Assembly: GCF_000143415.4 (NCBI RefSeq)
Contig: NW_003314285.1
Span: 1,205,370 to 1,269,369 of the forward strand
Source of the DNA: Selaginella moellendorffii
Lineage: Eukaryota; Plantae; Lycopodiophyta
DNA length: 64,000 nt
Direction of reading: 5' to 3'
The notes beneath the pieces were generated by a model that was given only the letters and a program-made list of their open reading frames with translations, was not told the DNA's origin and searched no databases. This document shows positions 23,798 through 64,000 of this stretch, one piece after another (positions within the stretch are counted from its first letter, which is position 1; each line of letters opens with the position of its first letter). Position numbers and translations under genes: made by a program.

Positions 23798-24576
23798 GTG
23801 TTGTAAATCTATTTTAGTGGGTTGTGGTATTTATATTGCATTTTGTCAAATTGACTTAGCACTTGACATTTATATAAATTTTTATAATAATGGTAGAAAC
23901 ATTGCTTGTGGTATTGCTTAATTGATGATCAAGTTATTATAATTGTGATATTTATATTATATCTATGTAATCCTAAAAAATATGTTTATAAAGTTACTTT
24001 ATCAAACGATCATCAACCCCAAAGTGGTTGATAGTGAAGCTAGTTCACTTGCATGTAGTAGAATTGTAATAACTTTGACTAAATTATCAAAAGTGATTCA
24101 TTGTGCTAAACTAGTGTTGGTATTTGAGAGTTTGCCTATTGAGGTTTTTGGAAGGGTTATAATATTTATTTGTTATAGTTTATCTTTAGATTTATTAGCA
24201 CTTGAAGTAAATTGTTAAATGGTGAAAGTGTGGGTAAAGGAAATCTAAATTGAAGAAATGAAGGTTCTGACAAACTTCAAAATATTGAAACATGTAAATA
24301 TTTAGGTTAAAAGTTTCTACTAAAATGAGTCATTTAAAAACAAGAACTTATCTTTTCTAAAGCTATATTATTTTACTATGACTACTACTATAGTTGTTAT
24401 ATTTTGATTTGACTATATGTTTTTGACTAATTTTATAGTTGTTATATATTTACATACTTTTCGTTCATTCAAAAGTTTTTTCTAGGGTTCTTAAGAAGAT
24501 GGGAAACAAGGAAAACAAAAAATATATAAATAAAAGTTGTAGTACAAAGGAATGTGAAAATGTTCACTATTATAAT

Positions 24577-34300: not shown

Positions 34301-36257
34301 TCATGTTTCTAGAAAAGTGCAATAGCCATTTTTGTACCCCAACTCTAAACTTTATCAAACTCAATTGTCTTAACCCCAAAATGTAATCTCTCTTTTAGGC
34401 TATATCATATAAACTACATACTAAGGTCTAAGCTAACTTAAATCAACTCTAACCTTTTCACTAGTTTGTATTAGCTTATGAAAATGAATGGTTTTTAGCC
34501 AAAGTAATAATCAATAGATCAGTCATTACAAAAGTTTAAGAAAATTTGAGAAAACTTTTCATCCAAGAGAAAGAATGACTCTCAATATAGGAATACAAAC
34601 TTTCAAGACTTAACCAACTTCCTCATACTAACAACTTCACAGAGGTTCATCTCAACATAAATTTTTATGACCTAGCAACATATTTAAGTATTGAACACCA
34701 TACCCATATTTTTAACATCTAACACCAACATCTGTAAATGCTAATGAATACCCAAAATATGATTATGAAGACCACATCTTCAAATATCTATATTGCATTT
34801 ACACTCTTCTTCAATCATTTTCAAGTTTTAATACAAAACTAAGATACTAACAAGAAAAATTATGTAAAAATCAAGCTCTAAGGAAAAACTCCTCATCACT
34901 CGAAATAACAATATCACTTCCTCCAACACAAGTAATAGCAATGTCAATGTCTTAACTTCATATTTTTTCCATCTAACAATTTATTCCAAATGTTAACAGA
35001 TTTATTAACAAGCTATAGCAAATAAATGTTATAACTTTTTTCCAACACCTCCATGGGCAAACTTTCAATAACCAAGGTACCATACAAGCTTAGCATAATA
35101 GGCCACCATTAAGAATTTAGTTAAAGCTATTACTATGCTACTTTGTGCAAGTAAACTAGCTTCACTATCAACCACTTTGGGGTTAATCATTATTTAACCA
35201 AGCAACTTCATAAACACATTATTTACGATTATATAGATATGATATAAAAATCATAATGACTTGATCATCAATCAAGTAACAGCATTAGTAAACCCATATT
35301 ATTACCTTAAAGTTATCAAATACCAACTCTATTCGACAAAATATAACATAAATGCCACACCCCACCAATAGAGATTTATAACACTGAACACCACCAACTT
35401 TTTTTACAACATAAACAAGCTCATACCACTCTTTTTCCAACCAAACTCAAACTAATCCAACACCAAATTATTCAAGGAGCAATAGCAAAGTTTCCTAGAA
35501 AATAATTAAGTATTGTAACCCATGTCTTTAATAGCAAGCCTAAACAAAATGGTTTAATGCTTCACCACTATCCATCCCACGACTCACCACTTGTAAAACC
35601 ATTATAATTAACATATATCAAGGTAAAGACTTTTGATTACATGATGTGAACATAAGCAATGAATCATACCTTATTGCAAATTGTCTCTCTAAGAAAAGAA
35701 AATTATTTATATGTTTGATCCTTTGTCCCTAATAACTCTCTTTTCAATTTCAACTTAACTAAACCTTAAACCTATATTCGTACTGCTTTCAGTGTAATTC
35801 AAGAAAATTTTATAAGAGAGCACGACAATGACTACTTGAACCAATAGACTAATCCTTACAGTCTTGATTGATCCACTTATAATCATGCCTAGAAAGGATC
35901 CACTAATGCCGTGCTAAACAATTATAAACTAATCCCACTTATAACAAACCTAGGGAAGGTTTACTTCTTATCCATGGTAATAAGGAACAACCCATGGAAC
36001 CACTGATAGGTTAATATTAATTTTGCCAACTCAAAGTGTAACCTTGAGTTGCTAATATACCTCACTCACAAGCTCAAGCGAAAGCTCATACAATCTAGTA
36101 CGAAAAGGTAACCAAAATTTATACCCAAGGAATAATTGCGAAGTTATAGCACCCAAACGTGTACCTACTTGGATAATCATTTTCATCTCTGTGTATGCAA
36201 CAAGACTAGTTGCCCAATCTCATTGGATAGTACTCACTGAGACTCATTTTTTGATAC
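31332..36257 (-). mobile_element. Heavily decayed internal region of a family-B LTR retrotransposon
   Basis: Collinear in reverse complement with 37740-38750 plus 47125-49520 and with 50570-53600. No long ORFs. Confidence 0.7.
32398..32641. repeat. Two perfect micro-tandem arrays: 46 bp x ~2.7 (32398-32521) and 17 bp x 3 (32591-32641)
   Basis: Units AATATGTGGTAATGCGAAAAGCCATAATTTATTTCAAACCATAAAG and TTAAGCCGCGATAGTTA. Confidence 0.9.
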
Positions 36258-39200
36258 TGTCGTAAATGTGACTATGGGTATCGAAAGTTATTTGTTGGTT
36301 AGTCCTCTTAGATATTCTTTTCTTACTACCACGATAGTAGAAGGTTGGTATTGCTAAACTTTTTATCAGTCTCCACTTAAGATAGTTGAGAAATTGATCA
36401 TCACATGTGCACTTAGACTAGAAGGGCACTAAGGAAGGAAATCTTAAGTTGTTATTTAGTCAAATATGCTTAACATAGTGATAAGAAACTCATATTGTTG
36501 ACTTACACTTGCTAGTGTTGAGAACCCCTGTAATATTGAGCTTGGTCCTTCAATATTTGCTAGATTATAACTTACAGTGTTTGCCAAACACACTCACTAT
36601 CATGCCCTTATTTGGTTCTATTGGCTATTTATAAAAAGTGTTTAAATTTGCTAATTTGGCATATTTATGGAATGTAAAGATTGTCTTGATGGTCCTATAT
36701 CCAAATTTGCAATTTAAAGACATTCCATATTTAATAAGTTTCAAACTTATCCCAAAAACTAACTCCTAGTACTAAGGGTGGCTAAGGGTGAAAGCCCAAA
36801 GCATGTGTTCCTCGAGAAGAGGAGAGGGGGTGGGGGGTGTTATGGGGGGTTCTAAATATACGATAAGGATAGTGGGTAGGTCAGGCATGGTTGACCAACT
36901 TGAGGCATAGTTTGGTTTTTGCTTATATGGTTGGCCTTGTTCGGTGTCTGACTTGGGTCTAAGCCTATATTCCACACCATGCTAGTTGGTGGAGTACTTA
37001 TATCCTTATATTAGACCATTGATATGTTAAAATAGTGCTAAACTCCATTTGACTCTATTTTGTATTTTGGTCTTGGCATTGGGATATTAAAAGTTCTAGG
37101 ATTGTTCCAACATCATTGTGTACTCCTATCCCTTCGCTCCTTGGGCTCAACACTCAAGAATCACTCTATGGTTCAATTCCTTCACTCCTTTACTCTTTTG
37201 CTATAAGCTTGGGAGTTTAGCATTGTACCTTCATTTATTGGCCTAAGGTCTTAAAACTCGGGTTCCACCCCAATGTCCTTGGACATGTGGCACAATTAGG
37301 GTTTAGGTTCCACTTTATGATTATCCTATGGTAAGTCACTATAAGATAAAGGGTGAAAACCACATGCTCTACATTTGGTATTAGAGACTTGGTGGAGACT
37401 GATAAAGTTCTTATTATAATCACTAGAACTAATTCTTTGGTTTTCAGTGTAAGGTTGGATGGTACCATATGGATTGTGTTGGGTTTTCAAACAATGAAGC
37501 ACTTGATGAGGTCATCTTCTACTGTCAACAATGTCTAGCTATAATGGCACAATCTTGGAAGTGATACAAAGCAAGGCAAGGACTAAAAATGGTAATCTAT
37601 CATAACAACGTATATTGAAAATTTGTTCCATGCAGAGGTGGCAGAGATGAGATGTAATCAAAGAGTGTAACTCTGTACTTCTTCCTAGAAAGACAAGCCT
37701 TAATGTTCATGGATGTACATGGTAAAGCTAAAGGATAAAGACTTGATGATCAAGTCATTGTGATACTTATATCATATCTATATGATAATAAGCAATGTAT
37801 TTACGAAGTTGCTTGGTTAAACAAGATTCAATCCCGAAGTGGTTGATAGTGAAGCTAGTCTATTTGAATAAAGTAGCATAGAAGTAGTTTGACTAAGTTC
37901 TTGATAGTGATCCATTATGCTAAGTTTAAATTGGTACCATAGTTCCTTGAGATTTACCCATAAAGGTTTTGAAAAGAGTTATAGCCTTCACTTTCTATAA
38001 CTTATTGATTTATCCATTAGCACTTGGAGTAGATTGTTGAATAGAAAAGGTGTGAAATTGAGGCATTAACATTTTTAACACTTGTGTTAGTGAAAATGAC
38101 ATTATTGTTTTGAATTATGAGGAATTTTCCTTAGAACTTGATTTTCCATATCATTTTTCTTGTTAGTGTTTTGGCATCACATTGGATTTTGAAGACGATT
38201 GAAGAAAATTGTTAGTGCAATATGAATATCTAAAGATGTGATCTTTGTGATCAAGTTTTGGATATTCAGTTTTGGATATTTAGGATCACATATTGATGGA
38301 AAATAGTGTCGAATGTAAGATATATGGGTATGATGTTTAATGCTTAAGCATATTGTTGGGTCATGAGAACTTATATTACAAATAAACTTATATAAGAGGA
38401 AGTGGGTTAAGTATTGAGAATTTGTATTCCTAAACTAAAAGTCATTCTTTCTCTTGGATGGAAATTTTCTACAAATTTTTTTAAGCATTTTCAATAGCTG
38501 ATTTATTAATCATTTTGCTTGAAAACCATTCTATTTTTAAAAGCCATTACAAACTAATGAAGGGGTTAGAGTTGACTTTGGTTAGCTTAGACCTTAGTAG
38601 ATAATTTATATGATGTGGCCTGAAAGGGATGTTAACTTTTAAGGCTAAGACAATTGAGTTGGATAGAGTTTAGAGTTAGTGTAGAAAATTGGGTGTTACG
38701 CTTTTCTAGAAAGGTGACCCTTACACCTTTTTTTTGTAGTGTTATATTTGGTGGCTATGAGACACAAATCCCTAAGCCCCAAAATGGAGCCAAAAGGGTG
38801 CCACATGGTAGTGGCCAAAGCGAAAGCCAAACAAGCGTAACAGGTTTAAACTAAAAGCTCTAACTTGAAAGGTCGAGAGCGGGAGTGGAACTCCCAACAG
38901 AATGCTCGAGGAACAAGCATGAAACATGCAATAAGTGAGTCTCTAGAAAAAGGACACGAGAGGACTAACACATGACACATGGAAGTGTCCGAGATGGAGA
39001 TCGAAAGAGACTGAGCTAGAGTCCGAGATGGACCTGAGATGGAGTCCAAAATGGACCGAGATGGAGTTCGAGATGGACCCGAGATGGAGTCCGAGATGGA
39101 GTCGGAGATGGACCCGAGATGGAGTCCAAGATGGAGTCCGAGATGGACCCAAGATAGACCTGAGATAGAGTTTGAGATGGACCTGAGATGGAGTCTGAGA

Positions 39201-45801: not shown

Positions 45802-48800
45802 TGGCAAGAAGAAAGAAAAGAAAGGGGGGAAAAGACAAAGGCAATCAAATAATCAAAACAAGCTAAAAGAAAAGCAAAAAGCACAATCTGAATCAAACTG
45901 TCAAGACCCCCAACAAGATCAAGACTGGAAAATGCTAAAGACAAAGAGAAAAAGCTAGTGAAAACAAAGAAGAGGCCTTAGACTGGTGTTGATTCAGATT
46001 GTGGAGAAATGGAACAAGGCTAACCTATATATACTATAGGTTGATGAAGCTCCACCACTCTTGGATCGAGGACAGCCTAAATACAGCTGAGGTCGAGGAG
46101 GCGCCACATCATCATCAGGAATGTGGCTCGAGACTCAGGAATCGGGAAGTGTCTCGAGAGTCAGGAATAGGGAAGTGTCTCGAGAGTCAGGAATAGAGAA
46201 GTGTCTCGAGAGTCAGGAATGTGGTTTGCAGGTCAAGAATCCGGCGAGAGTCAGGAATGTGGCAAGAATTGGGGGATTCCTGACAACCACTGGGAGGTCC
46301 AAGGCTAGAGTGAATACAGACTGTCAGGTAGGGTAGCTTGGTGAAGTGTTCAAGAGTCGGCTCTAGTTCCCTCGAGAGATCGAATGGTCGATGCTCCCAG
46401 TCCAAGTGTGGGTAGCACTACCTACTTGGATACCTAGTGTGACTCAACGGAAACTCGCTTTAAGCCCATGGCTAGAGCACCCAAAGGCAAAAAGCGAGAA
46501 GAGTATCCACAAGGTTCGCATAAGGCCACGGTGTTCCGAAATATTGTCCTAAAATCCCAGACTGTAGGATGGAAAGGAGCAGTCCTCTAGTGTGGTGACC
46601 AAGGATACGGTCATGTGGTGAGAAAGTCCTAGAGGACAGTGGGACATAGTGGTCAGGCCAGTGGGCCTTGTCCCAGTGACAGTGTAGGCAAACTCAGCCA
46701 TAGACGGGAAAGGGACTTGGTGGGGATTGTAAAAGGGATATTGGGGAAGGCGGTTCCCCATGTGTGTGGGCATCTTAAGGATGCTAAGGAGTGGATCTTG
46801 GATGGTCATTCTTGGACAGATGGCCCACTCGTTGAGAGACGAGACTACGATGCATGGACCACCGATATGACCAAGGTGAAGGGGCATGGCCTTAGCATAA
46901 CAGGCTGGTATATCAGTGGTACTTGGGGTGTCAGTCTTGGGACCAGACATATGGAGCACTTGGACTAAGTGCAAAGGAGGAGTGGCATGAATGCCATTCT
47001 CGGGGCTAGCAAGTCCCAAGTCCTGAATTGGACTTAAGGAGGTTGTGAATGAGACTCCTCTAAATGGTCAGAGGTGTGGTTAAGTGATTAAAGTAGAATG
47101 GAAAAATTAGTCGCTTACAGTGGCAAATTATATTTTGCATTTCATTAAATTCTATGAGAGTAGTGAACTTTTATTAATCTTGACTTAGTCTTGGTAGCTT
47201 TGCACCCTAGCTGAAGATAGTGATGTCTAACTTAGTTGTTTGAAGTTGAGGTGTTAGTACCTATTCTATAGCTTTCTATATAAGGAGGCTGTGTACTAAT
47301 ATAAGTTCATCTTATGGTCTTCACTTTAGTTTCAACTAAGTGTTGGTCATGCATAACTAACCTCTTTAAGGCATGCTTAGAGTTGCTGGCTAGACATGTT
47401 GGTGAGCTTATTACAGCTTGATTAAATTTGAGTGGTCATTTAATTTGTGCTTGTCCATGAACCTTTATCCTATACTTAGGGTATTACTTTCATGTTGGAC
47501 AATTATATGATTTAATGACAAGAGTTAGTGTTTGGGTCTTGTGAAGGCGAGTTAACAAATGATTATTAATTGTTTTGCAACTAGTAATTGCTTATAGACT
47601 TTGTCAAAAATTGTTGAAATTTGCTTCACTTAATGATGATTTAGGAGTGATAGACTCACTTTACTGGATGGTGTTACAAAGGATCATATCATGGGCTTGC
47701 ATTTTTTTTCTTCATGTTAGCATGTGAATTCCATCTTTGTTGATATCATTTGGTTGCATTTAGTTTGTGGTGTTAGATTACATTGAGTTTTGGATATGGT
47801 GATTCACTCCTTAATGATGTGTTATTTATAGCTAAGTATTGCTAAAGAATTTGTCTTAGATACTAAGTAAGGTATTTTTAACTTTGGTTCACTTGGTTAT
47901 TAAAGAGTTTTGAGTAGTGATCCACTTATACTTTCTTTTAGCTTTGTTCTAGTGTTGATAGTATTGAAGTGATGCTCTATCATTTACATTGTTAAAATTA
48001 AAAGTAGAGTGAAATAAGAAGCTTCTAGATGTGTTAAAGAGAATATTGTGGGTTGTACCATGATTTTCTCTTTAGTATTGAAGTTAGTTTATGCAAGATT
48101 TGTAATCATTGTTAAGTGAGACTTGACCATAGACTTCTTCAAGCTTTTAGTTCTTTGAGTTTTGTGCTCATTGTTCTATTTATTAAAAGTTGTTAGAGAA
48201 GCATTTTAGCTCATTAGCTTTGATATTGAAATTAACTTTTGCATCTGGCAATCATTAGTGATGATTGATTATTATCTAGGATAGTTGATTATTCTTATTG
48301 AAGATTTTACCTAATTATTATTAATATAAAATAATTTACCATTCTTTAGGATGGTGGATTATTTCTTCAATGATGATTATGCATTTTTCTATTAATAAAA
48401 TGATTGATGATATTTCATGATAGTTGGTAATTTTCTTTAATAGCTTATGGCTTTTTGCATTACCACATATTCTTTATGGTTTACTTTGGATTGGTATCTT
48501 TGTTGTTGACATTTTCTTGAGCAACTCTGGTTCTTTAGTGTTATTGATCAGAATAGTGTAACTATTAGCATGAACAAGTATTTATTCACCTTTATAGCAT
48601 TTACTTTGTTTTGTTGATTGTTGCTAGAGGTTGGTTCTAATAGATTTGTTTGGGTGATACATTTGCAAGTATTTTGTTTACCAATCAATGATACTTTGTG
48701 TTCTTATAGTTGTCTTTCATAAGTTGTTTGGCATACTATCTACACTATTTAATAGTTAAGTTTTATCATTTAGTGTTTTTGATGGTACACTTACTATTGA

Positions 48801-50569
48801 TTTTTGTTAGATAGTGAATCTTATATTTTCCAATTATAATAGTTTTAGTGGTTTTTATACTATAATACTGGTTTATTGGATGATAACTTACTTGGAATAC
48901 TTTTGTGTTCTAATCTAAGATTTATTAACTAATACTTAAATCTCTAAGATATCATTGTCTTTGACTTTGATATTATCCATAGATTGATCTTTGGATTTGG
49001 GCTTATATAGGCAAACTAGCTTTGGCATTTTGTGTGCATGGTAAAATCTTTAGTACTGGGTTAGCTACTATCAAATTGTCACATCACCTGCCTCTCTCTT
49101 GATGTTCCTTATTCTATTAAAAAAGTGTGACTATGTAAAGAACTCTAATTGCTTTTTTACAAAAGTCTATCTAAACTTTACTGACATGTTTAGTTTCTTT
49201 GCTCATGAGGGTTGTGGCCTCTAGCTTTTCTCTTTGTACCACTTGCGAGTAGGGGCTTATCACTTTTTCGTAAACTGGGTGACACTTAGCGCAGCAAGGG
49301 TGGCAAAATCTATTGATCATTTCCTTATTGACAATGGCCAAAAAGTATTTGAGTTGGTAGCACATTTGTGTTAGATAAAGAGGTTATCCAAACTCATTTA
49401 AGTTGGTGCATTTCTCACAAAGTGTAAACACCACAAACGTTTTCTAAAGTTTTTTCCTTAGTGGTAGTCTAAACTAGAGTATGCATAAACGAGGATGCCA
49501 ATCTTCCTTAAGGGGGGAAGAGTGTCACGAATATGACTATGGGTATCAAAAATTGCTTGTCGGTTAATCCTTTTGGATATTCTTTCCTAACCACGACAGT
49601 AGGAGGTCAGTATTACTGGATCTTTTATCAATCTTCACCTAAGCTAGTTGAGAAACTAGTCATCACATATGCACTTAGATTAGAAGGGCACTAAGGAAAG
49701 AAATCCTAAGTTATTATTTAGTCAAACATATTTGATATAGTGATGAAAAATTCATGTTGTTGACTTACATTTGCTAGTGTTGGGAACCCCTATGATATTG
49801 AGTTTGATCCCTTAATATTTGCTAAATGATAGCTTACCATATTTGCTAAACACACTCACTATCATGCCCCTTGTGTTGGTATTGTTTGGTTCCATTGATT
49901 ATTTATGGAAAGTATCTAGATTTGTTAATTTGACATATCTACAGAATGTAAAGATTGTTATGAACACAATGGTGTTGGTTTTGTATCCAAATTCACAATC
50001 CAATGCTATTCCATATTTAGTAAATTTCAAGCTTATTCTAGAGACTAACTCTTGGTACTAAGGTTGGATAAAAGTGAAAGCTCAAAGTATGCATTCCTCA
50101 AGGGAAAGGGGGGCATTATAGTGGGTCCCAAATGTATAGTAGGGATAATAATGGGTAAGTTAGGCATGGCTGACTAACTTAAGGCATAGTTTAGCTCTTA
50201 CTTCCTTGTTTTGCATTTGGCTTAAGTTTAAGCCTAAATTCCATACCATACAGATGGAATACCCATATCCTTAGGTTATGCTACCGATATGTTGAAATAA
50301 CACTAGACTCCATTTGATTCTATTTTCCATGCTAGTTTTGGCATTAGGATGCTAGAAGCTTTAGGACTGTTCTAACATCACTCCATGCTCTTGTCCCCTT
50401 GCTCCTTGGGTTGAATGCTCAAGAGTAATTCCATGCTTTAGTTCTTTTACTCCTTGATTACAAACTTGGGAGTTTGGCTCTATACCTTTATTCAATGGCC
50501 CAAGGCCATGAAACTTACGTTCCACTCCATTGTTCTTGGACGTGTGGCATATAGAAGGTTTAGGTTTAT

Positions 50570-53500
50570 GATTTGTTGATGATTTTGCCCAAAAGCCATT
50601 CCATATTCATGAGTCATTACAAACTAATAAAGGGGTTAGAGTTGATTATAATTAACTTGAACTTTAGCAAGTAGTTTATATGATACAGCTTGAAAGGGAT
50701 GTTGACTTTTGGGGCTAAAGAAATTGATTTATAGAGAAAAGTGGCTATTATGCTTCTTTAAAAATATGATCCTTATGCCTTTCTTCATTAGTGTTATACT
50801 TGGTAGCAAGTTGTATTTTGCATTTTGTTAAATTTTATAAGAGTAATAAGCTCTCACTAATCTTGATTTAGTCTTGGTGGTTCTCTACCTTAGCTAAGGA
50901 TTGTGATATCTAATTTAGTTGTTTAAGGTTGAGATGTTAATACTTAAACTGTAGTTTTATCTATTAAGAAGTTGTGTACTACATGAGTCCATTTTATAGT
51001 CTTCACTTTAGTTTTAGCTAAGTGTCAATCATGCATAGTTAGCCTTTTTTATTATACTCAAAGTTGTTGCCTAGACATATTAGTAAGTTTATTGCTATCC
51101 AATTAGATTTAAGTAGTTATTATTCATACTTGTCCATATTATTATATATTGTACCTATGGTGTTACTTTCTTGTTGGACAAGTATATCACATGATGATGT
51201 GAGTTTAGTGTTTGAGTCTTATAAATGTGATATGTGACCAACACCATATTGTTTAGGACAAGCTCTACATTCTATAGATATTCCATAGTGATTACTAATT
51301 GCTTTGTGACTAGTGATTGCTTATAAACTTTTTCAAAAATTGTTGGCACTTGCTTCACTTAATGATGATTTAACAATTATAGACTTATTTACCAAATGAT
51401 ATTGCGAAGGATTGTGTTCTTAAGATTTCATGATTTTTCCATATTAACATATTGGTTCTATCTTTGTTCATATTATCTAGTTGCATTTAGTTTGTGGTAT
51501 TGGATTGCAATGATATGTTATTTATAATTAAATATTGTTGAAGGATTAGTATTTTAGACCTTGATTAACTTAGTTGCTAAAAGAGTTTTAAGTGGTGGTT
51601 CACTTTTTCTTTCTCTAGCTTTATGGCATTCAAATGATGCTATGATATTAACATTATTAAAGTTCAGATTAGAATGAGATAGGATATTTCTTCATGGGTA
51701 TATTGTGAAAGTTTGACTTTCAAATAGTTAGTGTTTAGGTCTTATTGGAGATTAACATTTTATTCCACTAGTCTCAATGATAATTGTGTTGATAGTTTGG
51801 CTATACCTTTATATTATTGATATTTGTGCATTTGCTAATTAAAAAATATATTGATATTCAAACAAACTAAGTGGCAAGTTGGATTAGTTATATTTTAAAC
51901 AAGTTTATTTACTAAGGGTTGAGCTTTAACTTTTCCTTAAAGAGTGATTTAATCATGGACTATACTAGCTTTGCAAAAGGAAAAGTTAAGGATCGATCAA
52001 AGTTGTGGATCTTTATTGGATTTGAGTTGAGATAATATTGATTATTGATGATTCTTTTTATGTTCATTATGAAGTAAGTTACCTCTTGCTATAGACAAAA
52101 TATTGATTTAACGACCATTTATTAAGTATAATTTTGTTATGTTTGGCTTTTGGATTGATATATATGCTCTTCATTAACTTTTATATTATAAATTTTAGCT
52201 TGTAGATATGTTAAGCAGGATATTGTGGATTGTACTATGATTTCTTTTTTAGCATTGAAGTTAATTTATACGAGACTCATGATCATTGCTAAATAAGACT
52301 TACCTATAAAATTATTTAAGCTTTAATTCTTTGAATTCTTGTACTCAATTTTTTAATTGTTAAAAAGTTGTCAAAGAAGGCATTTTGGCTCATTAGTCCT
52401 GCTTATGAAGTTGGTTTATCCATCTGGTAATCATTGATGATGATTAACTGTCATTTATGATAGTTGATTATCCTTATTAAAGGTCCTACTTGATTATTAT
52501 TACTATTGGATGATTTATCATTCTTTGGGATAATAGATTCTTCTTTAATAATGATTGTGCATCTCTATTGAGGGGATGATTAACAATCTTTTATGATAGT
52601 TAATTGTTATCTTAATAGCTTTTGGTTTTCTACATTACTACATATTCTTTATGGTTTATTTTAGTTTGGTATTTTAGGTTAGAGATATCAGAAGGATGTT
52701 ACTAATACTTACTTTAGCAACTTTGGTTCCATAATTTTGTTGATTGAGATTTATTCAAATTGGCTGGAGTGATAGTTAGTATGAATGAGTATTTATTGGC
52801 CTTCTAACATTTATTTTATTCTATAGATTATTACTAAAGTTGGTTCTAATAGATTAGGATGTTATTTCCTTTAGGTAATATATTCACGAGAAATTTTTTA
52901 TCCAATTAATGATATTTTATATTTTTTTAGTTATCTTTTATAAGTGATTTGGCATGTTATCTGCACTCTTTGGTAATTAAATTTTATCATTGAGCTTTCT
53001 TGATGATATACTTGCTATTAAATATTATTAGATGATTAATCTTATATCTTGAAACTATAGTGATCTTGGTGGTTTTTATACTATACTGGTTTATCAAATA
53101 ATAACTTAATTAGAAAAATCTTATGTTTTAATATAATATTTATTCAATGATAATTTGATATTTTTATCTATGACTTTAATATTATCCATCTATTGACCTT
53201 TGGATTTGGGTTAATATAGGCAAATTAGTTTTAGCACTTTATGTGCATGGTGAAGTCTTTAATCATGGGGTAACTACTATTAATTAGTCATATCACCCAC
53301 CTCTCTCGATGTTAAAAGTGTGTAACTGCATAAACAACTTTTATTACCTATTTACAATAGTCTATTTAAACCTTACCAATAGATTTATTTTGTTTACTTA
53401 TGAGGGTTGGGCCTCTAACTTCTCTTTCTATGTCACTTGCAAGCAAAAGTATATCATCTTTTGTAATTTGGGCAATACTAAGAGTAGCAAAGGTGGTTGA

Positions 53501-53600
53501 TTCTATTGGTTATTTCCTTATCAGTGATGGTTAAAAGGTGTTTAAGTAGTAATGCATTTGTGTTAAATAGAAATGTTTCCATCTAATTCATTTAAGTTGA
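50570..53600 (+). mobile_element. Further decayed copy of the family-B internal region
   Basis: Repeats the sequence of 38500-38750 plus 47125-49410, without the nested insertions. Confidence 0.7.
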
Positions 53601-55610
53601 TGTATTACACAAATCCCTATGTCCCAAAATAGAGTCAAATATAAGTTATATGACAATTGCTAAGGCAAAAATCTAACAAATGTAATACATTGGACCAAAA
53701 GCTCTAACTTGGAAAATCAAGTGCAAAAGTGGAACTTCCAAAGAAGTGCTCAAGTAATAAGTACAAAGTGATCAGTAAACAAGTCTTTAGAAAGGGATAA
53801 AAGAATGACTAACACATAGCAAGTGTCATAACATATGGAAGTGTTAAGATCGAGACTAAAATGAAGTCCAAGATTAGGTACAAGACTAAGTTTAAGATTA
53901 AGTTCAAGACTGAGTTCAATTTCAAGTTTCAAGTTGAGACCAAATTTGTGATTGAGACCAAATCCAAATCTGAGTTCAAGGATGAAAGCCCAAAGTGATC
54001 ATCTGATAAGTTCCTAGAGATAGAAAGGGGGAGAACTTTAGGGGAACTAGTGTGTCTAGGAAAGACTAATATAATTAAGGAAAGCTATAATTATATGGTG
54101 GGTGATGATATGAACACTTAAAAGTCTACGAATAAAGTAAGCATGAATGGATAAATGAAGTGACTTGATGAAGTGTTCAAGAATTAGCTTTAGCTCTTCT
54201 AGGAGATTGAATGGTCAATGCTCCCTAAGTGTGGGTGGTATTACTTATTTGGATACTTTGTATAGCTCATTAAAACCTCACTCTAGCCACATAGTTGAGA
54301 CATCTTTGTGGTAAAAGATGGGGTAGTACCTACATTAAGCTCTAATGTTTTGAAATGTCATCCCAAAGTAACTAACAATGAAAACAAAAAAGAGTAGCCT
54401 TTTTGCTTAGTAATCAAATGTATGGTTATATAGTGTAGGAAGTCCTAAATGTTAATAAGACTTAGTGGTCAAACCTTCAAGCCCTAACCTAATGGCAACG
54501 AGGGTGAACATTGTTGTGGATGAAGTAGGGATTGAAAAAGGGATATTAAAGGATATTGTTCCCTAGCAATATTGTTTCCTAAGAATGCTAAGGAATGGTT
54601 ATAAAATAACCACTTGTGATTGAAAGGTATAGTTTTAGAAAGATAAGACTATGGCATAAAGTTACTAATAAAATATTGAGCCTTACTATAAGAAGTTAAG
54701 ACTTCAATAGTACTTTTGGGTGTCTAAAGTGGGATTGAATATATAACACACTTGGAATAAGTGAAAAGTCGACATGGGCTTGAGATTACCTATGAAAGTT
54801 AACAAGTACCCTAAGTTGGGATGAGAACCTATAAAAGTTGTGAATGTGACTCCTTTAAATGGTTTAAGGTGTGATTAAGTGACTAAAGTATAATGAAAAC
54901 TTTAATCATTTACAATTGATTTTAACTCCTTTGAAAGATTGGATGGTTTATGTTCCCAATCCAAATATAAGTGGCACTACCTATTTAGATACTTTGTGTT
55001 AGTCACCAGAACCTCATTCTAACCATATAGCCAAAGCACTCTAGTGGCAAAAAGTGGGGAGAGTACCTCAGGACTCATGATATTTCGAAATATCATCTTA
55101 AAACCTTAAATGGCAAAAAGGAAGAAGAGTGGTCCTTTTGCTTAGTAACCAAGGGTATGGTTATATGATAAGGAAATTCTAAAGGTCAATAGGGTTTAGT
55201 GGACAATCTTTCAAACTCTAAACTATTGACGAGCACTACCATAAATAAAGAGGGATTTGTTGGGGATTAAAGAAAGGATATTGAAAGATAATATTCCCCC
55301 ATGTTTTAGGGCATTCTAAAGATGCTAAGAAGTGGTTATAAAATGACCATAGTTAGAATGGATGGCTTAGTTTTGGAGAGACAGGTATGTGGTATAAATG
55401 GTTTTGAATTACATTTGAGACAATGTGAATGGATAAAGCTTTAGAGGCTAAGATACCTTTAAATGTGTTTAATAGCCTTAAACATATAGAACATTTAGAG
55501 AAGTGTGAAGGCAACATTTTAGAGACCACCTTTAGGGTTTTGGTTATGAGTGAAACTTTTTCAAGTGGTCAAAAGTGTAGTTAAGCAATGAAAGTAGAAT
55601 GGAAAGTTTA
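53601..55610. mobile_element. Strongly AT-eroded family-A LTR (53601-54914) followed by a second partial copy
   Basis: TGTATTACACAAATCCCTA...ATCATTTACA; collinear with 28164-30030. Confidence 0.7.
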
Positions 55611-56454
55611 AGAATTAGGGAAAAAAACATAGGTGAAAGCAAATCCAAATTGGGCAAATGTAAGAAGTGATACATTCAAGAAGATATCTCATAAGATCAA
55701 GTGAAGATCATCAGTAATAAAGTATAATAGGGTTAGCATGCCACCTCCCTATCCCCCTTAGAGAATCTTATGTTTATATAGGATTTAGAGACTAAAGAAG
55801 ATCTCATAGCCTACTAGTGGTAACACAACTTGTGTGAGGGCTATCTAGTGGCAACACTAGCTTTAAGACTTTAATTTTCAATATAAATGTGTACTCCCTT
55901 ATGTTTCTCTTGGAAAGTCTCATAGCAATAGCTTCTAGGTGCATAGGGATTATTCCCAAAAGTTTCCCCATGATCTACATGTTCTAAAGTGCTTTAGAGT
56001 GCTGGGTGCAAAGATCTCTCATAGGCCCATAAATGCCTGCAGTAGAAATATCTAAAATAGAGAACTAGTGATTGGAGTAGTAATTCAAAAAACAAACAAA
56101 AAATGTATAGAGCAATGAAGTAAGGTGAGAGCTTTGGAGGAAGTTGCTAACTGGCACCATATAGCCCTATGGGGACAAGTTCGTCTATTCCACTTTGTTG
56201 AATGGCACATGCCAAGCATTAGAAATAACACACCTTACTTTAGCTACACTCTATTTTTGTAGCTTTTGTAACATATTGTTATATAAGGAGCAAGCTAGGT
56301 GAATAGCCATGGTTATTTTGGCTTTAGCAACATATAAGACATTATATTCTTCTTAGTTTTTGGACTATTGCATCCATCCTAGATGGTTCAAGTTTAATTG
56401 GATTGAAAATATATATACATACAATTTTATTCGTTTTATTAACAAATATTGAAA

Positions 56455-57447
56455 ATGAATGCTTTTCTAGTTTATGCTTTATTTGTGCTTTATATTTTAC
56501 CAGATCAAATTTATTCATGTACTCTCGATTCACAATGTCCTAGTGGTTATAGATGTAAGAAATATATTTGCAAAAGAACATGTTTTCCAGGTGATTTTTA
56601 AATTTTTTATCTTAGATTTAAGTAATTTTTCAACAGGTGATGCAGTATTACAACTTTATAATGGAAATAAAAAACAAATGAAAAATATTTCTATAGGAGA
56701 TAAGGTTTTTATTTAAAATCATTTTCATCTTTTTGTATATAACATTAAATTTTAAGTTCTTTTCTAGGTTGCAGTTCGAACTAAAAATGGTGAAATACAT
56801 TATTCTGATATATATGCTTTTGGGCATCAAGATTATGATGCTTATGAAAATTTTATTCATATTGATATTGAAAATAATAAAAGCATTGAATTATCCCCTT
56901 TTCACTTTATACCAATAGTATCAAAAACAGGTAATAGTATTATGATGAAAATCTTAAATTACTCAATTATATTTTAGGCTCAATCATCTATAAATATGCT
57001 AATGATATTACTAAAAATGATTTATTACTATCTCTAGATGAAAAATTAGGAAAAGTTTTAACTTATAATATAACTGGTAAGTGATATAAATAAATAGTTT
57101 AACTCACTATTTTTATTTTTATAGGTTTTTATACTTTAAAAAAGCATGGACTGTATAACCCATTCACACTATTTGGGGATTTAATTGTTAATGATATTAT
57201 TGTATCACCTCATAGTGATTGGTTTTTAGATGATTTATTTAATTTTTTTAAGTTAAGTTACATATTACCTTATGTATATCATATTATCTTATTTCCTATT
57301 CAAGTTATATACATGAATTTAAATTTTAAAATTTATCTTTATTTATATAAATATTTTACAAGAAACATATTAATGATTAACCATATCATTGAAGTGGGAA
57401 TATTATGGACATTTATCTATAAAATAAAATGTTTTATTAAAGAATAA
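56455..57447 (+). CDS. Secreted Hog-domain (Hedgehog-type Hint + sterol-recognition-like region) protein, 262 aa; exons 56455-56590, 56637-56704, 56768-56930, 56978-57076, 57125-57447
   Basis: Four GT-AG introns of 46-63 bp splice to a stop-free 789-nt frame: MNAFLVYALFVLYILPDQIYS-CTLDSQCPSGYRCKKYICKRT-CFPGDAVLQLYNGNKKQMKNISIGDKVAV..YSDIYAFGHQD..IELSPFHFI..YANDITKNDLL..GLYNPFTLFGDLIVNDIIVSPHSDWF..YHIILFPIQVIY..*. Confidence 0.92.
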
Positions 57448-57622
57448 TATTTTGGCATAAGAATACTCAAACTATTATGAATAAATTTAACTATATTAAA
57501 ATTTTATCACTTTGAATAAAAATAATTAAAATTCAAGATTTAAATACTTAATCCATATTTTTAGGGCAAGAGTTTCTTTTAGTTCCAAAAATGTAGTTAT
57601 CTAACTAACCATTTTGTTGGAG

Positions 57623-58952
57623 ATGGTGTTGCCGGCTGCAATCGTGTGCCTATTCTTCGTGGTCCTTGTGCTTGCCATTTGCAACCAACAAGGACACCCA
57701 GTGCTCTTCCCGGTTGTGGCCAACACAAGAGCAGCGAGCTCGGTCAGAAAAGCAGCACTCCCAAGAGATCAACACACCGGTAGTGATTTGGATCAACAAG
57801 CTCACCTAGAGGACGACTTCTTCTCACTTGCCCCGGACATCAGTGAGAATAGTCACACTCACTTCCCAGCAGTAGCAGGCAAGAACGTTGATCGTGAGCG
57901 TCAGGATCGAGTGACACCATCAACACCATTAACAGCACCACCATCTCCAATGCTAGCAGTAACACCATCGCCACTCCTATCGCCTGCGTGGGAAGGAAAC
58001 CATCCCACTAGCAACTTCTCCTGGAAGCAAGACAATGACGATGGCGACAATCAGACATCTCTCGAGTCCACCCTCACGTCGGCATCCATGGAGAACAAGA
58101 CCATCCTCGTCACCGAGCTCAACAAAGCATGGGCCGTGGGGGGAATGTTCGACTTGTTTTTGCGCAGCTTCCACACCGGCGAAGGAATCCTCCACCTCTT
58201 GGATCACCTCCTCGTTGCCACGCTCGACCGGGAGGCATCCGCCGTGTGCAAATCCAAGCGCCTTCATTGCTTCCGCCTGAAAACCCCCAGGCTGGATCTC
58301 TCCACGGAGAACAATTACAACACCCCAAACTATCTCGAGACCAACAAGCTCAAGATCCAGTTCCTGGGCAATGTTCTCAAGCTTGGATTCAACTTCCTCT
58401 ACACAGTAAGAGAGAGATATTCTTCGATCTTTGTTCCACCACCTTTCTCCTTGACGTGCACAGGACGCTGATATACTCTGGTTTCGCGCTCCATTCCAGC
58501 ACTTCTCGCGAGAATCCGACCTCGACGTCTCTTGCAACCACGATTTCAATGGAAACTCGTCCGACATTGCGAACCACATCAACACGGGCATCCTCCATGT
58601 TCGATCAAACCAGCGGACCATCAAGCTCTTCGACCTGTGGTTCGAGCAGCAGGAAACTTCCCCGGACAAGAACGACCAGGACGTGTTCGAGGCCATGAAA
58701 GAGACGCCTGATTTTGCCAGCATTGGATTGAAGCTCAAGTACATCCCAACCGAGTACTTGAGCGGCTACTGCCACATGAACACCGACTTTGAGAAGATTT
58801 GCGCCATTCACGCCATCTGCTGCATTAGTCAGGAAGTAAAGCTCGCCGCTCTCAAGCAATCTCTAGAAGATTGGCTCCTGTACAAAACCATCACTCCCCA
58901 GGAGAGTAGAGAGATTGATTTCCAATTTACCGTCCCAGAGTGCTCGATGTAG
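57623..58952 (+). CDS. Nucleotide-diphospho-sugar transferase family protein (GT77-like, At4g15970-like); exons 57623-58405 and 58464-58952
   Basis: Type II TM anchor. ASMENKTILVTELNKAW, DLFLRSFHTGEG, LGFNFLYT|DADILWFRAPF (DxD motif), NTGI, DQDVF and HAICC. Confidence 0.9.
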
Positions 58953-59225
58953 ATAGCAGCTGCGATGAAAAAAAAGAGAGACTGTTCTCGATCTAAATTT
59001 ACGAAAGCACTCACCTGTGTAGCCTTTCGTGATTGCAAACGAAAAGCAAAAGGTCTACCTCAAACCTCCGGCATGGCAACAGTTAAAACTGGTCTCGTTT
59101 ATATAAGAAAATGTAGCATGCAGTTGGCATTTCTTTCGCAAGATCCTGCCAAACAGAACAATTCAGTCAAGGTTTCAAAACCAAGAACGCAATGAATTCG
59201 TGGGAGAAGAAATCCACCTTGAGAC

Positions 59226-60257
59226 TTATTTGTTGCAAAACTCCCGACTAGAAACGTTGGTGCCATCTACGAGAGGAACGCGTTGATCCGGACGAAGAAT
59301 GCTCCAGTTGGGAGAAGCTGCAGCTCGAAGCCACCGGAAGTCGTCAACTTTCTCCCACAATCCAGTCTCCTCGGCCAAGTTCGCTGCCTTGAGATGATCC
59401 TCAATCCCTTGGTAGTGGAAAGCGTAGGGAGCAAACCGGACTCCACTAACATGCTCCACGATCGGGCGACTCCGGACCCGGAGATAAAAATCCGTGTTGG
59501 TGGTGGAGTGGATTCTAATCTGGTGGGACGCGAGCATGAAAATGCAGCTGTCGATCTCCTCCAGAAGAATGGATCCCGTGACTGCGCTCACGTAGACATG
59601 GCAGTTCTTGAGCTTGTGGAAGAACATGGCGCGGAAGATCCCCCTCAAGAACACCGTGCAGTGCGTCAAGTTGGAGAGCGTCACCTCTGTCTCGCTGGAT
59701 TCACCCGAGTCGTGGACGATGGTGGAGTTCTTGGCGTCGCGAATGGAGTGGAGCTTGGCAGCTCGATCAGCCATGAACGATGGAGTCTCATCTTCTTCTT
59801 CCTCGTTTTTCACCGCTGGTGGCGTTACCGTTTCTTTCGGTGACGAGGAAGAGTTCTTGGCCCGGAAGGAGAATTTCTTCTTGGGGATGACCTCCGCGAT
59901 GGCGCTCTCGAGCGATTGCTTGAGCCTGTCCACCACCGATCGAGAGCTCTGGACGTCGTAAGGCGGGAGGAAGTAGCTCGCATCCGACACCATCTTGTCC
60001 ATGGCCGCGAGCTGGACCGCGACGGCATCCATGTCGGCCTTGCCGGATGCGCTGCCGGACTGGCGGATGCGACTGAGCGATTCCTCCACGACCTTGCGCT
60101 GCTCGTCGAAGGCGCCCTGGAACGCACCTGTGGATTCCAGTGGATTCGCGGATGCCGCTGCGTCGTGGCGCCGGGCCTCCGCCTGGCGCGCCCGCTCGCT
60201 GTCCAGCGCCGCCAATCGCTCCAGCATTGCAGCATAGCGCCCATCCTTGGCCTCCAT
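59226..60257 (-). CDS. TFCC: Tubulin-folding cofactor C
   Basis: SYFLPPYD, PKKKFSF, ASHQIRIH, YLRVRSRPIVE, FAPY and VDDFRWLRAAASPNW. Confidence 0.95.
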   Translation of the reverse strand: MEAKDGRYAAMLERLAALDSERARQAEARRHDAAASANPLESTGAFQGAFDEQRKVVEESLSRIRQSGSASGKADMDAVAVQLAAMDKMVSDASYFLPPYDVQSSRSVVDRLKQSLESAIAEVIPKKKFSFRAKNSSSSPKETVTPPAVKNEEEEDETPSFMADRAAKLHSIRDAKNSTIVHDSGESSETEVTLSNLTHCTVFLRGIFRAMFFHKLKNCHVYVSAVTGSILLEEIDSCIFMLASHQIRIHSTTNTDFYLRVRSRPIVEHVSGVRFAPYAFHYQGIEDHLKAANLAEETGLWEKVDDFRWLRAAASPNWSILRPDQRVPLVDGTNVSSREFCNK

Positions 60258-60396
60258 CGCTAGGGTATTTGCTAGTTTGCTAGAGTGAAACTAGGAGATG
60301 GATTGGAATTCCAGGGCCATCGCGGAGATGGATCGCGATTCCAGGTATTGCGTGAAATCCAGCTGCTAGACAGCGAGCTAGAATGCGTCGCCAAGA

Positions 60397-62529
60397 ATGG
60401 CCGGGGTGGGAGGAACAGGAAATTCATCCAAGAACAGGGAGATAGTTGTGAGGTTCCAAGACGCTGGATCCAAGCCCAGCGTGGCGCTCATCCTCGCGGC
60501 TCTCAAGGCATGTAGCAAATCCAGGAATGAGAAACTGGGTAGAGAGATCCACGCCGCGGCTCGCGAGAGTGGATTCATGGCGAATTCTTTCGTGGCGAGC
60601 TCTCTCATCGACATGTACGCCAAGTGTGGGAGGATGGCCGACGCGAGCAGTGTCTTCCACGGGATGGAGATCCACAGCATTGTCTCGTGGAATTCCCTCA
60701 TCCTTGGCTACGCCGAGAATCACCAGCCAGAGAGAGCGCTCCACCTCTACGATCGAATGCTGCGAGAGGAAAGCCTGGCTCCAAATCACGTCACGGATCT
60801 CGCTGCTCTCAAGGCCTGCGTGGTTCTCGCCAGGGAAGAAGACGCGCAGATCATCCATGGCCAGCCAGTGAAGATGAAAACTCTGGAGATAGTGATGAGG
60901 ATCCACTCTCGAGCTGCTAGAGCTGGATCAAGCGGGCAAGAAGAACTCCACATCTTCCTCGCCAACTTTTTGGTGGACGTTTACTCGAGGTGTGGCAGCG
61001 CGGGTGATTCTCGACGAGTTTTCGATGCGATCCAACACCGCAGTGTGGTTTCATGGACCTCGATGATTCTCGGCTATGCTGACAACCATCGCGGAGAGCT
61101 GGGCTTGGAGCTCTTCGAAGAGATGCGTCGCGCCGGCTGCTCGCAAAACCAAGTAACTTTTATCGCTGCGTTGAAAGCCTGCTCGAGCATGGCGGAGAGA
61201 GATCCCGGCGCGCTCGTCCACGGCAAGCTTGTCAAGCTCCAGGCCTTGGAAACTGGGATGAGTCTCCACTCTCGAGCCCAAGCAGCGGGACTTTGCAAGG
61301 ACTCGGTGGTGGCCAACACTTTGATCGACATGTACGCGAAGTGTGGAAGCATGGAGGATTCACGCAGAGTTTTCGACGCCATGCCGAGGAAGTGTGTCAT
61401 CTCCTGGACCGGGATGATCATGGGGTATGCTCTAAACGGTGACGGCGAGGTAGCTCTCGAGTTCGTCCGGCAAATGGACGATCATCACTGCCAGTCGAAT
61501 TACGTCACAGTTCTCGCTGCGATCAAGGCCTGTGTGTCTTTGGCGGAGAATGAGGCCGGGACGATGATCTTGGGCAGGATGGTGAAGACGAGTTCGTTGG
61601 AGATCGGACGAACTCTACACCGGCAAGCTCGAGAAAACGGTCACGAGAAAGAGATCTTCGTTGCCAACGCTCTCATCGACATGTACTCCAAGTGTGGCAG
61701 CCTCGAGGACGCGTTTAAGATGTTTTGGAGCATCCGTAGGCGAGACTCGGTGTCTTGGAGCTCGATCATCCAGGCCTGTGCTGACAATGGCGAGGACGAG
61801 CAAGCGCTCCATCTCTTTTCGACGATCCAGCGCGAGAAGAGAGTTGTGAGCCCCGCGATCTTTGTGGCGGCTCTAAAGTCCTGTGGAAATCTGGGAGCTC
61901 TCGAACGCGGAAGAACTCTCGAGCTAGAAATCACAAACGCGGGCCTCGCGAGAAATCCCATGGTGGCAAACTCTCTCGTTGGGGTGTACGGTCGGTGTGG
62001 CAGTACGGCCGACGCCCAGCGAGTGTTCGACTCCCTTCCGCCCCAATGCCGCGACCTGGTGACGTGGAATGCCCTCGTGGACGCGTACGGCCGCCACGGC
62101 GACACGGCCCAAGTAATGTCCATGTTTCACGCGATGCAGCACAGCCACGACCGTACGCTGTGGCCCAATTCCGTAACTTTCTTGCTTGCCTTGAGCGCTT
62201 GCTGCCATGCTGGCCTTGTGGACGAGGGCAAGACGCTCCTGGCCGCGATGATTCAAGAGAATCGAGTGATTCCGTCGATCAAGCACTATACCTGCGTGAT
62301 CGACCTGTTGGGCCGAGCTAATCGCTTGGAGGAGGCCGTGGAATTGGTGGAGCGATTGCCCTTCGAAGCGGATGCGGTGATCTGGACGTGTTTGATGGAT
62401 GCCGCGCACAAATTTGGGGATGATGGCGTTGGGAGGAGAGCATTTGATGCCGTGGCGAAGCTGGAGGCGCGATCGGCAACGTACGTGATGATGTCCAACA
62501 TCGTAGGAGCGGCAGCGCAAGAGCCCTAA
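60397..62529 (+). CDS. PLS-class PPR protein with a short E-type end, no DYW
   Basis: Repeated SLIDMYAKCG / VSWNSLI / AALKAC triplets; terminal HYTCVIDLLGRA..WTCLM..TYVMMSN. Confidence 0.95.
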   Translation: MAGVGGTGNSSKNREIVVRFQDAGSKPSVALILAALKACSKSRNEKLGREIHAAARESGFMANSFVASSLIDMYAKCGRMADASSVFHGMEIHSIVSWNSLILGYAENHQPERALHLYDRMLREESLAPNHVTDLAALKACVVLAREEDAQIIHGQPVKMKTLEIVMRIHSRAARAGSSGQEELHIFLANFLVDVYSRCGSAGDSRRVFDAIQHRSVVSWTSMILGYADNHRGELGLELFEEMRRAGCSQNQVTFIAALKACSSMAERDPGALVHGKLVKLQALETGMSLHSRAQAAGLCKDSVVANTLIDMYAKCGSMEDSRRVFDAMPRKCVISWTGMIMGYALNGDGEVALEFVRQMDDHHCQSNYVTVLAAIKACVSLAENEAGTMILGRMVKTSSLEIGRTLHRQARENGHEKEIFVANALIDMYSKCGSLEDAFKMFWSIRRRDSVSWSSIIQACADNGEDEQALHLFSTIQREKRVVSPAIFVAALKSCGNLGALERGRTLELEITNAGLARNPMVANSLVGVYGRCGSTADAQRVFDSLPPQCRDLVTWNALVDAYGRHGDTAQVMSMFHAMQHSHDRTLWPNSVTFLLALSACCHAGLVDEGKTLLAAMIQENRVIPSIKHYTCVIDLLGRANRLEEAVELVERLPFEADAVIWTCLMDAAHKFGDDGVGRRAFDAVAKLEARSATYVMMSNIVGAAAQEP

Positions 62530-62644
62530 ACAAGCTCTGTTTTTCCCGCTCGGGTTTGAATTTTAGGGTGGATATTCTGGCCGTTAGATTGGAGGGGATC
62601 CAAGGGTGATAACATCCCAGGGTTTTAGAAGCGTCTAGAGAGAA

Positions 62645-63854
62645 ATGGCTGCAGCTATGGCGCCCTCGTCGTTGATCGCCGCGAGGTCTTCCGCAATTCA
62701 GCTCAACGCGCCTTCTACTTCCACAAAAGTAAGCATTTTTATTGATTTCTCGCTCTTTGGCTTCTGGAGCATTCATAGATCTACTTTTTCTTGATTTTAC
62801 TGAGCTACATTCTATAAACTATGCTAGAAATCAAAAATTTTGTTCTCTTTGTTTGCTAATTCTTAGAGTTTTTCGTTTCCTTTCCTGATAAAATCGGATT
62901 TTTTCAGCTTATCTCGAGGAGCTGGACAGGCCTTCACATGGAAGCCGGAAGTTCATTGTCTGTGACAATTTCATCGCCCCACGCTACGAGGATAAGGAGT
63001 GGTTCTGTCCAAGTTAGAGCAGGAGTTACCGCAACAGCACCATCAAAGGTAAGAGAATTTGTCAAAACTTCCTCTCTTTTTTAATTCCTTTGGGGTTTTG
63101 CAGTTCAAGACTCTAAAACCTCTTGGAGATCGAGTGCTTGTCAAGATCCAAAAAGCAAATGAAACGACACCAGGTGGAATTTTACTGCCAGTGACATCAC
63201 AAACCAAGCCTCAGGGTGGAGAAGTTGTAGCAGTCGGATCAGGCAAGACCATTGCCGACAAGAAAATCGATCCTTGTGTCTCGGTAAAAAATGTTTTCGT
63301 TGGTGTTGCTGGTTTGTAACTTTGATCACAGATTGGTGACATGGTTGTCTACTCCAAGTACGCTGGAACCGAGGTCCAATTCGATGATGCCGAGCACGTC
63401 TTGCTCAAGGAGGACGACCTCATTGGTTTCTTGTCGACCGACGATATCAAAGACTTGAAGCCACTCAACGAGAGAGTCTTGATCAAGGTATGGAAGAACT
63501 TTTGGTATTTAAACCGCTAGAGCCTTTTTCTGTTCCTTCTTTACAGATAGCAGAGGCCGAGGACAAGACGTCCGGAGGTATCATCCTCACCGAAAATGCC
63601 AAAGAGAAGCCCGTCACTGGCACGGTACCAAACTGTCGTTTATCTTCTAGCTGGGGATTGATGCGAGCTTGTGTGTTTAGGCTGTCGCCGTTGGATCTGG
63701 AGCTTTCGGAGAGGATGGGGTGAAAAAGCCGCTAGATATTGCTCCAGGGAACTCGGTCATGTATTCCAAGTATGCTGGAAACGAGTTTAAGAGCAAAGAC
63801 GGGAGCGAGTATGTTGTGATCCGTGCATCGGACATTCTCGCAGTTTTGCCATAG
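62645..63854 (+). CDS. CPN20: Chloroplast 20 kDa co-chaperonin (tandem GroES domains), multi-exon
   Basis: Transit-peptide-like N-terminus. [37 protein letters not shown], then a second domain [38 protein letters not shown]. Confidence 0.93.
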
Positions 63855-64000
63855 CTAGCTCCCAAGGATTGAAACAAAAACCAATCAATTTTATTCTGGG
63901 AAAAAAAACAACTAGAATCAAGAGGTAAAAGTCTTGTTCCATTTACAACGATGCTAGATCTTCGTCTACGTAAATACACCCGAAACAGTAGCAAACTAGG

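Follow-up and report, generated by a model that had tools for sequence, protein, structure and literature searches.

To our knowledge, animal Hedgehog is regarded as the only case in which a protein is covalently linked to a sterol. Hog proteins have been reported in Selaginella moellendorffii, S. lepidophylla and Physcomitrella (Burglin 2008, PMC2362128), and the same work describes the nematode Hogs Shog1 and Shog2 of Xiphinema and Xhog3 of Trichinella, with predicted N-terminal peptides of 15, 25 and 34 residues that have no known function. Our literature searches for functional studies of any plant Hog found nothing beyond that report. In Drosophila Hedgehog (Hh), the D46H (= D303H) mutant, available as structure 6TYY, keeps its structure and its sterol-transfer activity and accepts more sterols (PMC9163320). 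Finally, the DPY module of Dumpy (PF21164) is a small, autonomous two-disulfide unit with the spacing Cx5Cx5Cx4C (bioRxiv 10.1101/2025.09.16.676614; structure 1OIG).

We analysed a stretch of 64,000 nucleotides of S. moellendorffii (contig NW_003314285.1, forward strand), hereafter called the window, in which positions 56455-57447 of the + strand hold an intact five-exon Hog gene of 262 amino acids (aa). The initial annotation had suggested that the 21 residues encoded at 56518-56580 could be a peptide of a class with which it was not familiar from plants. A new class is not at issue, as plant Hogs, and nematode Hogs with N-peptides of 15-34 residues, were already described in PMC2362128. The gene, itself unannotated, adds a member to an established family, and its cargo is a minimal form of a four-cysteine type that recurs there. 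These 21 residues are probably the entire N-terminal cargo of a Hog of seed-free land plants, released by predicted Hint autoprocessing. The gene is organised as follows:

56455-56590, + strand: exon 1
56591-56636, + strand: intron 1, 46 nt, GT..AG
56637-56704, + strand: exon 2
56705-56767, + strand: intron 2, 63 nt, GT..AG
56768-56930, + strand: exon 3
56931-56977, + strand: intron 3, 47 nt, GT..AG
56978-57076, + strand: exon 4
57077-57124, + strand: intron 4, 48 nt, GT..AG
57125-57447, + strand: exon 5
56455-56517, + strand: predicted signal peptide MNAFLVYALFVLYILPDQIYS, residues 1-21 (hydrophobic core, (-3,-1) rule)
56518-56580, + strand: cargo CTLDSQCPSGYRCKKYICKRT, residues 22-42, 63 bases within exon 1
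56581-57228, + strand: Hint module, residues 43-190, exons 1-5 (Pfam PF01079)
57229-57363, + strand: helical segment resembling a sterol-recognition region (SRR-like), residues 191-235, after the family motif HSDWFLD
57364-57447, + strand: hydrophobic C-terminal tail (Kyte-Doolittle), residues 236-262, and stop codon

Translation of 56455-56590 gives MNAFLVYALFVLYILPDQIYS, CTLDSQCPSGYRCKKYICKRT and CFPG in that order, and the cargo coordinates proposed in the initial annotation are exact, residue 22 beginning at 56518 and residue 42 finishing at 56580. The leader, for which AF2 models a helix at residues 2-14, has a hydrophobic core of 12 residues, FLVYALFVLYIL, and ends in P-D-Q-I-Y-S. Judged by the (-3,-1) rule alone, S21|C22 would be its only good cleavage site, with P at -6, I at -3 and S at -1. 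An in-frame TAA lies at 56440, 15 nt 5' of the ATG, with no AG between the two, so that an additional upstream coding exon is unlikely; a different N-terminal exon, which had been named as a way in which the gene model could fall, is thus improbable, and the closest paralogue has the same signal peptide.

The whole N-terminal cargo of this Hog precursor is supported as a basic four-cysteine 21-mer. As stated in the initial annotation, translation places 21 residues between signal peptide and Hint, spaced C-x5-C-x5-C-x4-C, with 5 K/R and 1 D; the reduced peptide has a mass of 2454 Da, a pI of 9.2 and a net charge of about +3.7. Cysteines account for 4 of its 21 residues and for only 2 of the 241 residues in the remaining protein (Fisher p = 4e-4). 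The Hint Cys1 downstream of the cargo is also real (Pfam PF01079, E = 5e-25, residues 41-187). AF2, run with 101 relatives, gives the cargo a pLDDT of about 50, and thus no modelled disulfide pairing. The suggestion that the mature peptide would start with Cys stands for this gene and its AT-rich neighbour; it does not extend to the paralogues of normal GC content, in which 4-5 residues precede the first Cys.

The best structural analogue of this cargo, rather than a homologue, would be the DPY module. The two agree exactly in register (Cx5Cx5Cx4C) and span about 21 residues per unit, and the elements CxxxS-x-CPS and C-VNQ-x-C are common to DPY, to the cargo and to its closest paralogue; since the register equals that of an autonomous two-disulfide fold, a folded mini-module is plausible. 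DPY differs in being repeated in tandem, hundreds of times, within a matrix protein of insects, whereas here a single peptide lies upstream of Hint. In profile searches, the cargo of the window is not listed for PF21164 and that of the paralogue reaches 16.7 against a cut-off of 27 bits, while PDB 1oig is matched with E = 0.31. All profile matches of the cargos to DPY, EB, Lustrin, Dickkopf_N and Nodulin_late fall below their cut-offs, and none of the curated families is matched by the window cargo. The resemblance that the initial annotation saw to nodule cysteine-rich (NCR) peptides is not upheld: Nodulin_late (PF07127) gives no match for the window cargo and 16.4 against 30.4 bits for the cargo of the paralogue P0166, and NCR peptides are stand-alone genes composed of signal peptide and peptide, whereas the present peptide is fused to a Hog domain. 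An atlas feature search on exon 1 returned only generic look-alikes in which a leader precedes a small Cys-rich peptide (NCR, toxins, LEAP-2), all scoring under 0.8, which is chance level.

PF01079 scores 88.8 bits (cut-off 29.7) over residues 41-187, the family profile matches Drosophila Hh-C (6tyy) at 1.6e-33, and the AF2 model, with a pLDDT above 93 for residues 41-230, retrieves with Foldseek Drosophila Hh-C 6TYY and 1AT0 as best structures (TM 0.96, rmsd 1.1 A). Like animal Hedgehog, the protein is a secretory precursor with a Hint fold, Cys1 in CF(P/T), the His of the TXXH motif (here S111-P-F-H114) and a C-terminal helical region; among the 101 relatives, C43, F44 and P45 are near-invariant and H114 is invariant. 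Unlike animal Hedgehog, it has no Hedge domain (no Pfam HH_signal match, and only 21 residues between signal peptide and Hint), and the residue at -1 to Hint Cys1 is Thr, not Gly. The motif-J cysteine of the SCYA loop (Hh C143/C400) is absent, the window protein having S183-P-H-S, and it is also replaced in moss and red-algal Hogs (PMC2362128). The general-base Asp (Drosophila D303 / D46) is likewise missing: H88, within Y-A-F-G-H, falls on D303 in the profile alignment and is His in 99% of the family. Given the reported activity of the Drosophila D303H variant, it is thus a base of another kind; it is the natural equivalent of the engineered D46H in Drosophila Hh.

AF2 places helices at residues 191-235, where Hh has its sterol-recognition region, and W188, L190, D191, Y207 and P213 hardly vary across the family; compared with the family consensus, the window copy carries Q208H, R215Q and G222N in this SRR-like part. 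The hydrophobic tail, modelled by AF2 with low confidence, has a 19-residue Kyte-Doolittle peak of 1.39, compared with 1.5-2.0 in relatives, and may act as a membrane anchor or GPI signal. Across the family, the tail that follows K-Y-G-G-S resembles a GPI-attachment or tail-anchor signal.

We propose the following route of release. The precursor would enter the ER, where the signal peptide would be cut after S21, and the four cysteines would form two disulfides in a mini-module resembling DPY or an EGF subdomain. Hint would then make a thioester at T42-C43, to be resolved by a hydroxyl nucleophile placed by H88, either a plant sterol held on the SRR-like helices or water. A basic peptide of 2.45 kDa would thereby be freed from a membrane-tethered Hog-C, with or without a C-terminal lipid ester. 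The broader proposition, that seed-free land plants make sterol- or lipid-esterified two-disulfide mini-peptides by Hog autoprocessing, with a His base tolerant of plant sterols, is offered as a tentative and rather unlikely extension. More speculatively, the last cargo Cys, at a distance of 3-5 residues from Hint Cys1, could pair with it in a disulfide that acts as a redox gate on release.

The gene and its relatives constitute a very small and chemically tractable test of sterylation by a plant Hint, the 21-mer being accessible to synthesis. The Hint adjoining this cargo naturally carries the Asp-to-His swap of the general base that is active and sterol-tolerant in Drosophila. Transfer of a plant sterol, if true, would mean that this chemistry predates animals, would provide the first case of protein sterylation in a non-animal organism and would define a new kind of lipidated plant peptide, as membrane-anchored ligand or as defence peptide. 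If Hint only hydrolyses, the system would be a self-cleaving pro-peptide.

An exhaustive protein search returned 3081 relatives, the best being S. moellendorffii EFJ13329 (76% identity to a model of 130 aa), while a word-indexed search gave a single distant match with the whole window protein and none with exon 5. All the named organisms among the relatives looked up (Selaginella, Diphasiastrum, Ceratodon, Marchantia, Adiantum) are seed-free land plants. The Hogs of seed-free land plants (in S. moellendorffii e.g. P0166 and P0154, among XP_/EFJ entries with automatic names such as 'warthog protein 4/6' and 'indian hedgehog B') share with the window protein the signal peptide, a short cargo, a Hint of CFPGDA type, the motifs FGH and HS-x-WFLD, the helical segment and the hydrophobic tail, at a Hint identity of 36-41%. 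Unlike them, the window copy and its neighbour have a GC content of 23% and group apart on a long branch, and this AT-rich pair has the shortest four-cysteine cargo (21-23 residues), with the first Cys directly after the predicted signal cleavage. The nematode short-cargo Hogs resemble the window protein in predicted N-peptide length and belong to another kingdom and another Hog subfamily.

The check on paralogues proposed in the initial annotation came out positive: the Hog domain is conserved among them and the cargo varies, and the closest relative retains the cysteine register. At least a dozen short Hog genes occur in S. moellendorffii; behind a canonical signal site, their cargos are of the following kinds:

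P0166: four-cysteine cargo TNIVSCTTTADCTTAGLTGFTCNNGICQNPG, C-x5-C-x9-C-x4-C, GC-normal, longer loops
P0154: four-cysteine cargo QSGEACLPIPDNCTAGFKCRKIVVNGMKTFACIADG, C-x6-C-x5-C-x11-C, GC-normal, longer loops
P0008, P0159, P0168 and P0169: Pro-rich cargos of 28-70 residues
P0170, P0171, P0048 and P0167: cargos of 4-6 residues (TNTNNS, TNTS, TNTTG)
P0174: large cargo

The Pro-rich cargos are extensin/AGP-like, and an N-glycosylation sequon occurs within the cargos of 4-6 residues (locus L003 10001-11019, P0170, P0171, P0048, P0167). The cargos of P0166 and P0154 have G-[FY]-x-C in common, and the pattern C-x5/6-C-...-G-[FY]-x-C-...-C-x3/4-|CFPG joins them to the window peptide. At least three lineages of Selaginella Hogs have a four-cysteine module directly 5' of Hint Cys1, and the last half of this module is also present in a moss Hog, Ceratodon P0003, in which a long Cys-rich region ends in TGFCNQGECKLQA before CFPG. 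The last two cargo Cys stand just before Hint Cys1 in 34 of 127 relatives, with 2-6 residues from the final Cys to Cys1. Two relatives from transcript assemblies, P0009 and P0161, carry a single hevein cargo (Chitin_bind_1, 36 bits). They resemble the window protein in having a signal peptide and one small disulfide-rich domain on the same Hog subfamily (34-35% identity), and differ in that this domain is a recognisable eight-cysteine Chitin_bind_1. Because these relatives carry a chitin-binding cargo, a defence role is plausible, by analogy, for the released peptide.

The locus of EFJ13329 lies on S. moellendorffii GL377634.1 (designated L002), with genes for B3, DUF308, Cpn10, PPR and TBCC. 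Window positions 58794-64000 are 96.7% identical to L002 21157-15956, as befits S. moellendorffii or a nearly identical genome, and by gene order the window Hog lies in opposite orientation just beyond the point where L002 ends. The two AT-rich Hog genes have only 77% DNA identity and 71% overall protein identity. Given this gap between flanks and genes, together with the gene order, EFJ13329 was rejected as an orthologue; on sequence grounds, the two genes are paralogues in inverted orientation on either side of a block of about 10 kb. The conservation of cysteine spacing, which the initial annotation had proposed to follow in orthologues, is consequently compared here between paralogues. Between the two lies a degenerate third AT-rich Hog copy, with fragments like exons 2, 3 and 4 at L002 13079-13195 and 14383-14560 (- strand), between the B3 and DUF308 genes.

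The 130-aa EFJ13329 is a mis-annotated, truncated model of a full gene of 262 aa: its first exon is false and derives from an upstream repeat, and the true exons 1 and 5 are missing. The annotation is hereby corrected. The corrected exons of this gene, hereafter paralogue A, are:

L002 10220-10361: exon 1
L002 10427-10494: exon 2
L002 10562-10724: exon 3
L002 10773-10871: exon 4
L002 10923-11239: exon 5

Paralogue A has 23.6% GC, and all four intron positions are those of the window gene. Its leader is MKSFIFYILFVLYVLPNQIYS and its cargo CLINSQCLSGYKCVNQICKKSKK; in pairwise alignment with the window protein, by which cargo and tail were compared, the cargo has the same Cys register and two additional residues before Hint Cys1. 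In the dispersed or tandem repeat 5' of the real gene (L002 9300-10200 and 10001-10060), ggattctagttataata.agacataaagtggctcac recurs several times.

Nei-Gojobori estimates between the window gene and paralogue A gave the following dN/dS values:

Hint: 0.24
C-terminal part: 0.44
Cargo: 1.09, from 13.2 non-synonymous and 2.8 synonymous differences, which are small numbers

Nucleotide identity is 78-88% in exons, 52-62% in introns and about 45% in flanks (shuffled sequence: about 40%). Purifying selection has thus acted on the coding sequence ever since the gene was duplicated, as indicated by the ratios for Hint and the C-terminal part and by exons that are kept while introns and flanks are near saturation. 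Within the cargo, the cysteines and an S-G-Y-x-C core are fixed, and the loops change freely around them.

The cargo ratio of about 1.1, against 0.24 for Hint, would also fit a peptide that is a dispensable stub, inactive by itself both as a signal and as an antimicrobial, with selection acting on the Hog domain, on the membrane-tethered C-terminal product or on any short leader or adduct carrier. We regard this as possible but unlikely. Rapid change between fixed cysteines is usual for secreted cysteine-rich peptides, and all four Cys and the S-G-Y-x-C core are kept between the paralogues; at the non-synonymous divergence of the cargo, we estimate the probability of retaining all four Cys roughly at 0.04. 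The stub reading draws on the fact that one genome has 4-6-residue, Pro-rich and four-cysteine cargos on the same Hog domain, and that the tree nests tiny and Pro-rich forms next to four-cysteine forms, P0154 and P0166 being sister to them; yet the four-cysteine arrangement survives in these two proteins despite Hint sequences only about 40% identical to that of the window. Nematode Hogs offer it a parallel, with N-peptides of 15-34 residues likewise without known function (PMC2362128).

Against the peptide as an actual cargo, which we favour, weigh the absent motif-J cysteine, the Thr at -1, the longer branch and lost consensus residues described below, and the RNA data. Three RNA-seq runs of about 9 million records each have zero reads over 55500-58313, the neighbouring gene being covered, and the coding exons were not found in any RNA run of the index; the read retrieval may silently lose reads, and few conditions were sampled. 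The only RNA contig near the gene (57455-57622) is small, lies just 3' of the stop codon and comes from a doubtful RNA run. The window copy could accordingly be a silent duplicate, recently inactivated or silenced in heterochromatin, that yields no peptide and whose frame is left over from past selection. This is a reading to which we give little credence. It fits a gene of 23% GC in an AT-rich block of eroded repeats beside genes of 50% GC, the degenerate third copy nearby (L002 13079-14560), and a branch of 0.31 for the window copy against 0.08 for the paralogue, with three consensus residues lost; the tree flags compositional bias for the AT-rich pair and leaves it as a long unresolved branch. 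The frame itself argues otherwise: neither stop, frameshift nor loss of a splice site is seen over 262 codons and four introns, at a base composition that makes stops frequent and gives an open frame of 262 codons a chance of about 1e-11; the Hint ratio is 0.24, and none of the near-invariant residues of Hint, catalytic or structural, has been lost. Moreover, the sister gene is equally AT-rich and intact, so that the compositional shift is old, having occurred before or along with the duplication, and compatible with function, the gene not being destroyed by it.

A foreign origin, whether as contaminant or by horizontal transfer, with a nematode, protist or fungus as source, might at first sight be suggested by the 23% GC coding sequence, the introns of 46-63 nt and the NCBI paralogue names 'warthog' and 'indian hedgehog', but it is highly improbable, since the region is collinear with S. 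moellendorffii GL377634.1, which has a paralogue of the same composition, all named relatives looked up are seed-free land plants, expressed genes of the host have introns of 55 and 72 nt, and DNA runs of S. moellendorffii contain part of the gene (22-27% of its sampled words, which fits a divergent individual). Nematode or protist contamination and a fungal RIP-type genome were rejected on the same collinearity, host introns and land-plant relatives.

The short host introns were seen in RNA contigs and reads over window positions 58506-59294 (- strand), with GT..AG junctions at 58959/59015 and 59144/59217; introns of this length in an expressed neighbour are thus normal for the host. From these junctions, the transcript of the 343-aa TBCC-like ORF (59226-60257, - strand) has two more exons than the single-exon L002 model.

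Finally, several compositional features of the region were recorded. The low-GC islands (about 23%) in which both frames remain intact extend over window positions 56340-57600 and L002 10200-11280, among neighbouring genes of about 50% GC, and the Hog protein of the AT-rich pair is rich in I, L, Y, K, F and N, matching this composition. Long blocks of low GC (26-35%) occupy window positions 21000-26000, 31000-39000 and 47000-56300. Their skew is strand-specific, with G>C and T>A at 47-53 kb and the opposite at 32-36 kb, and they resemble repeats eroded by C-to-T change on one strand. These AT-rich blocks have a repeat of about 480 bp in common with L003 19235-19732.
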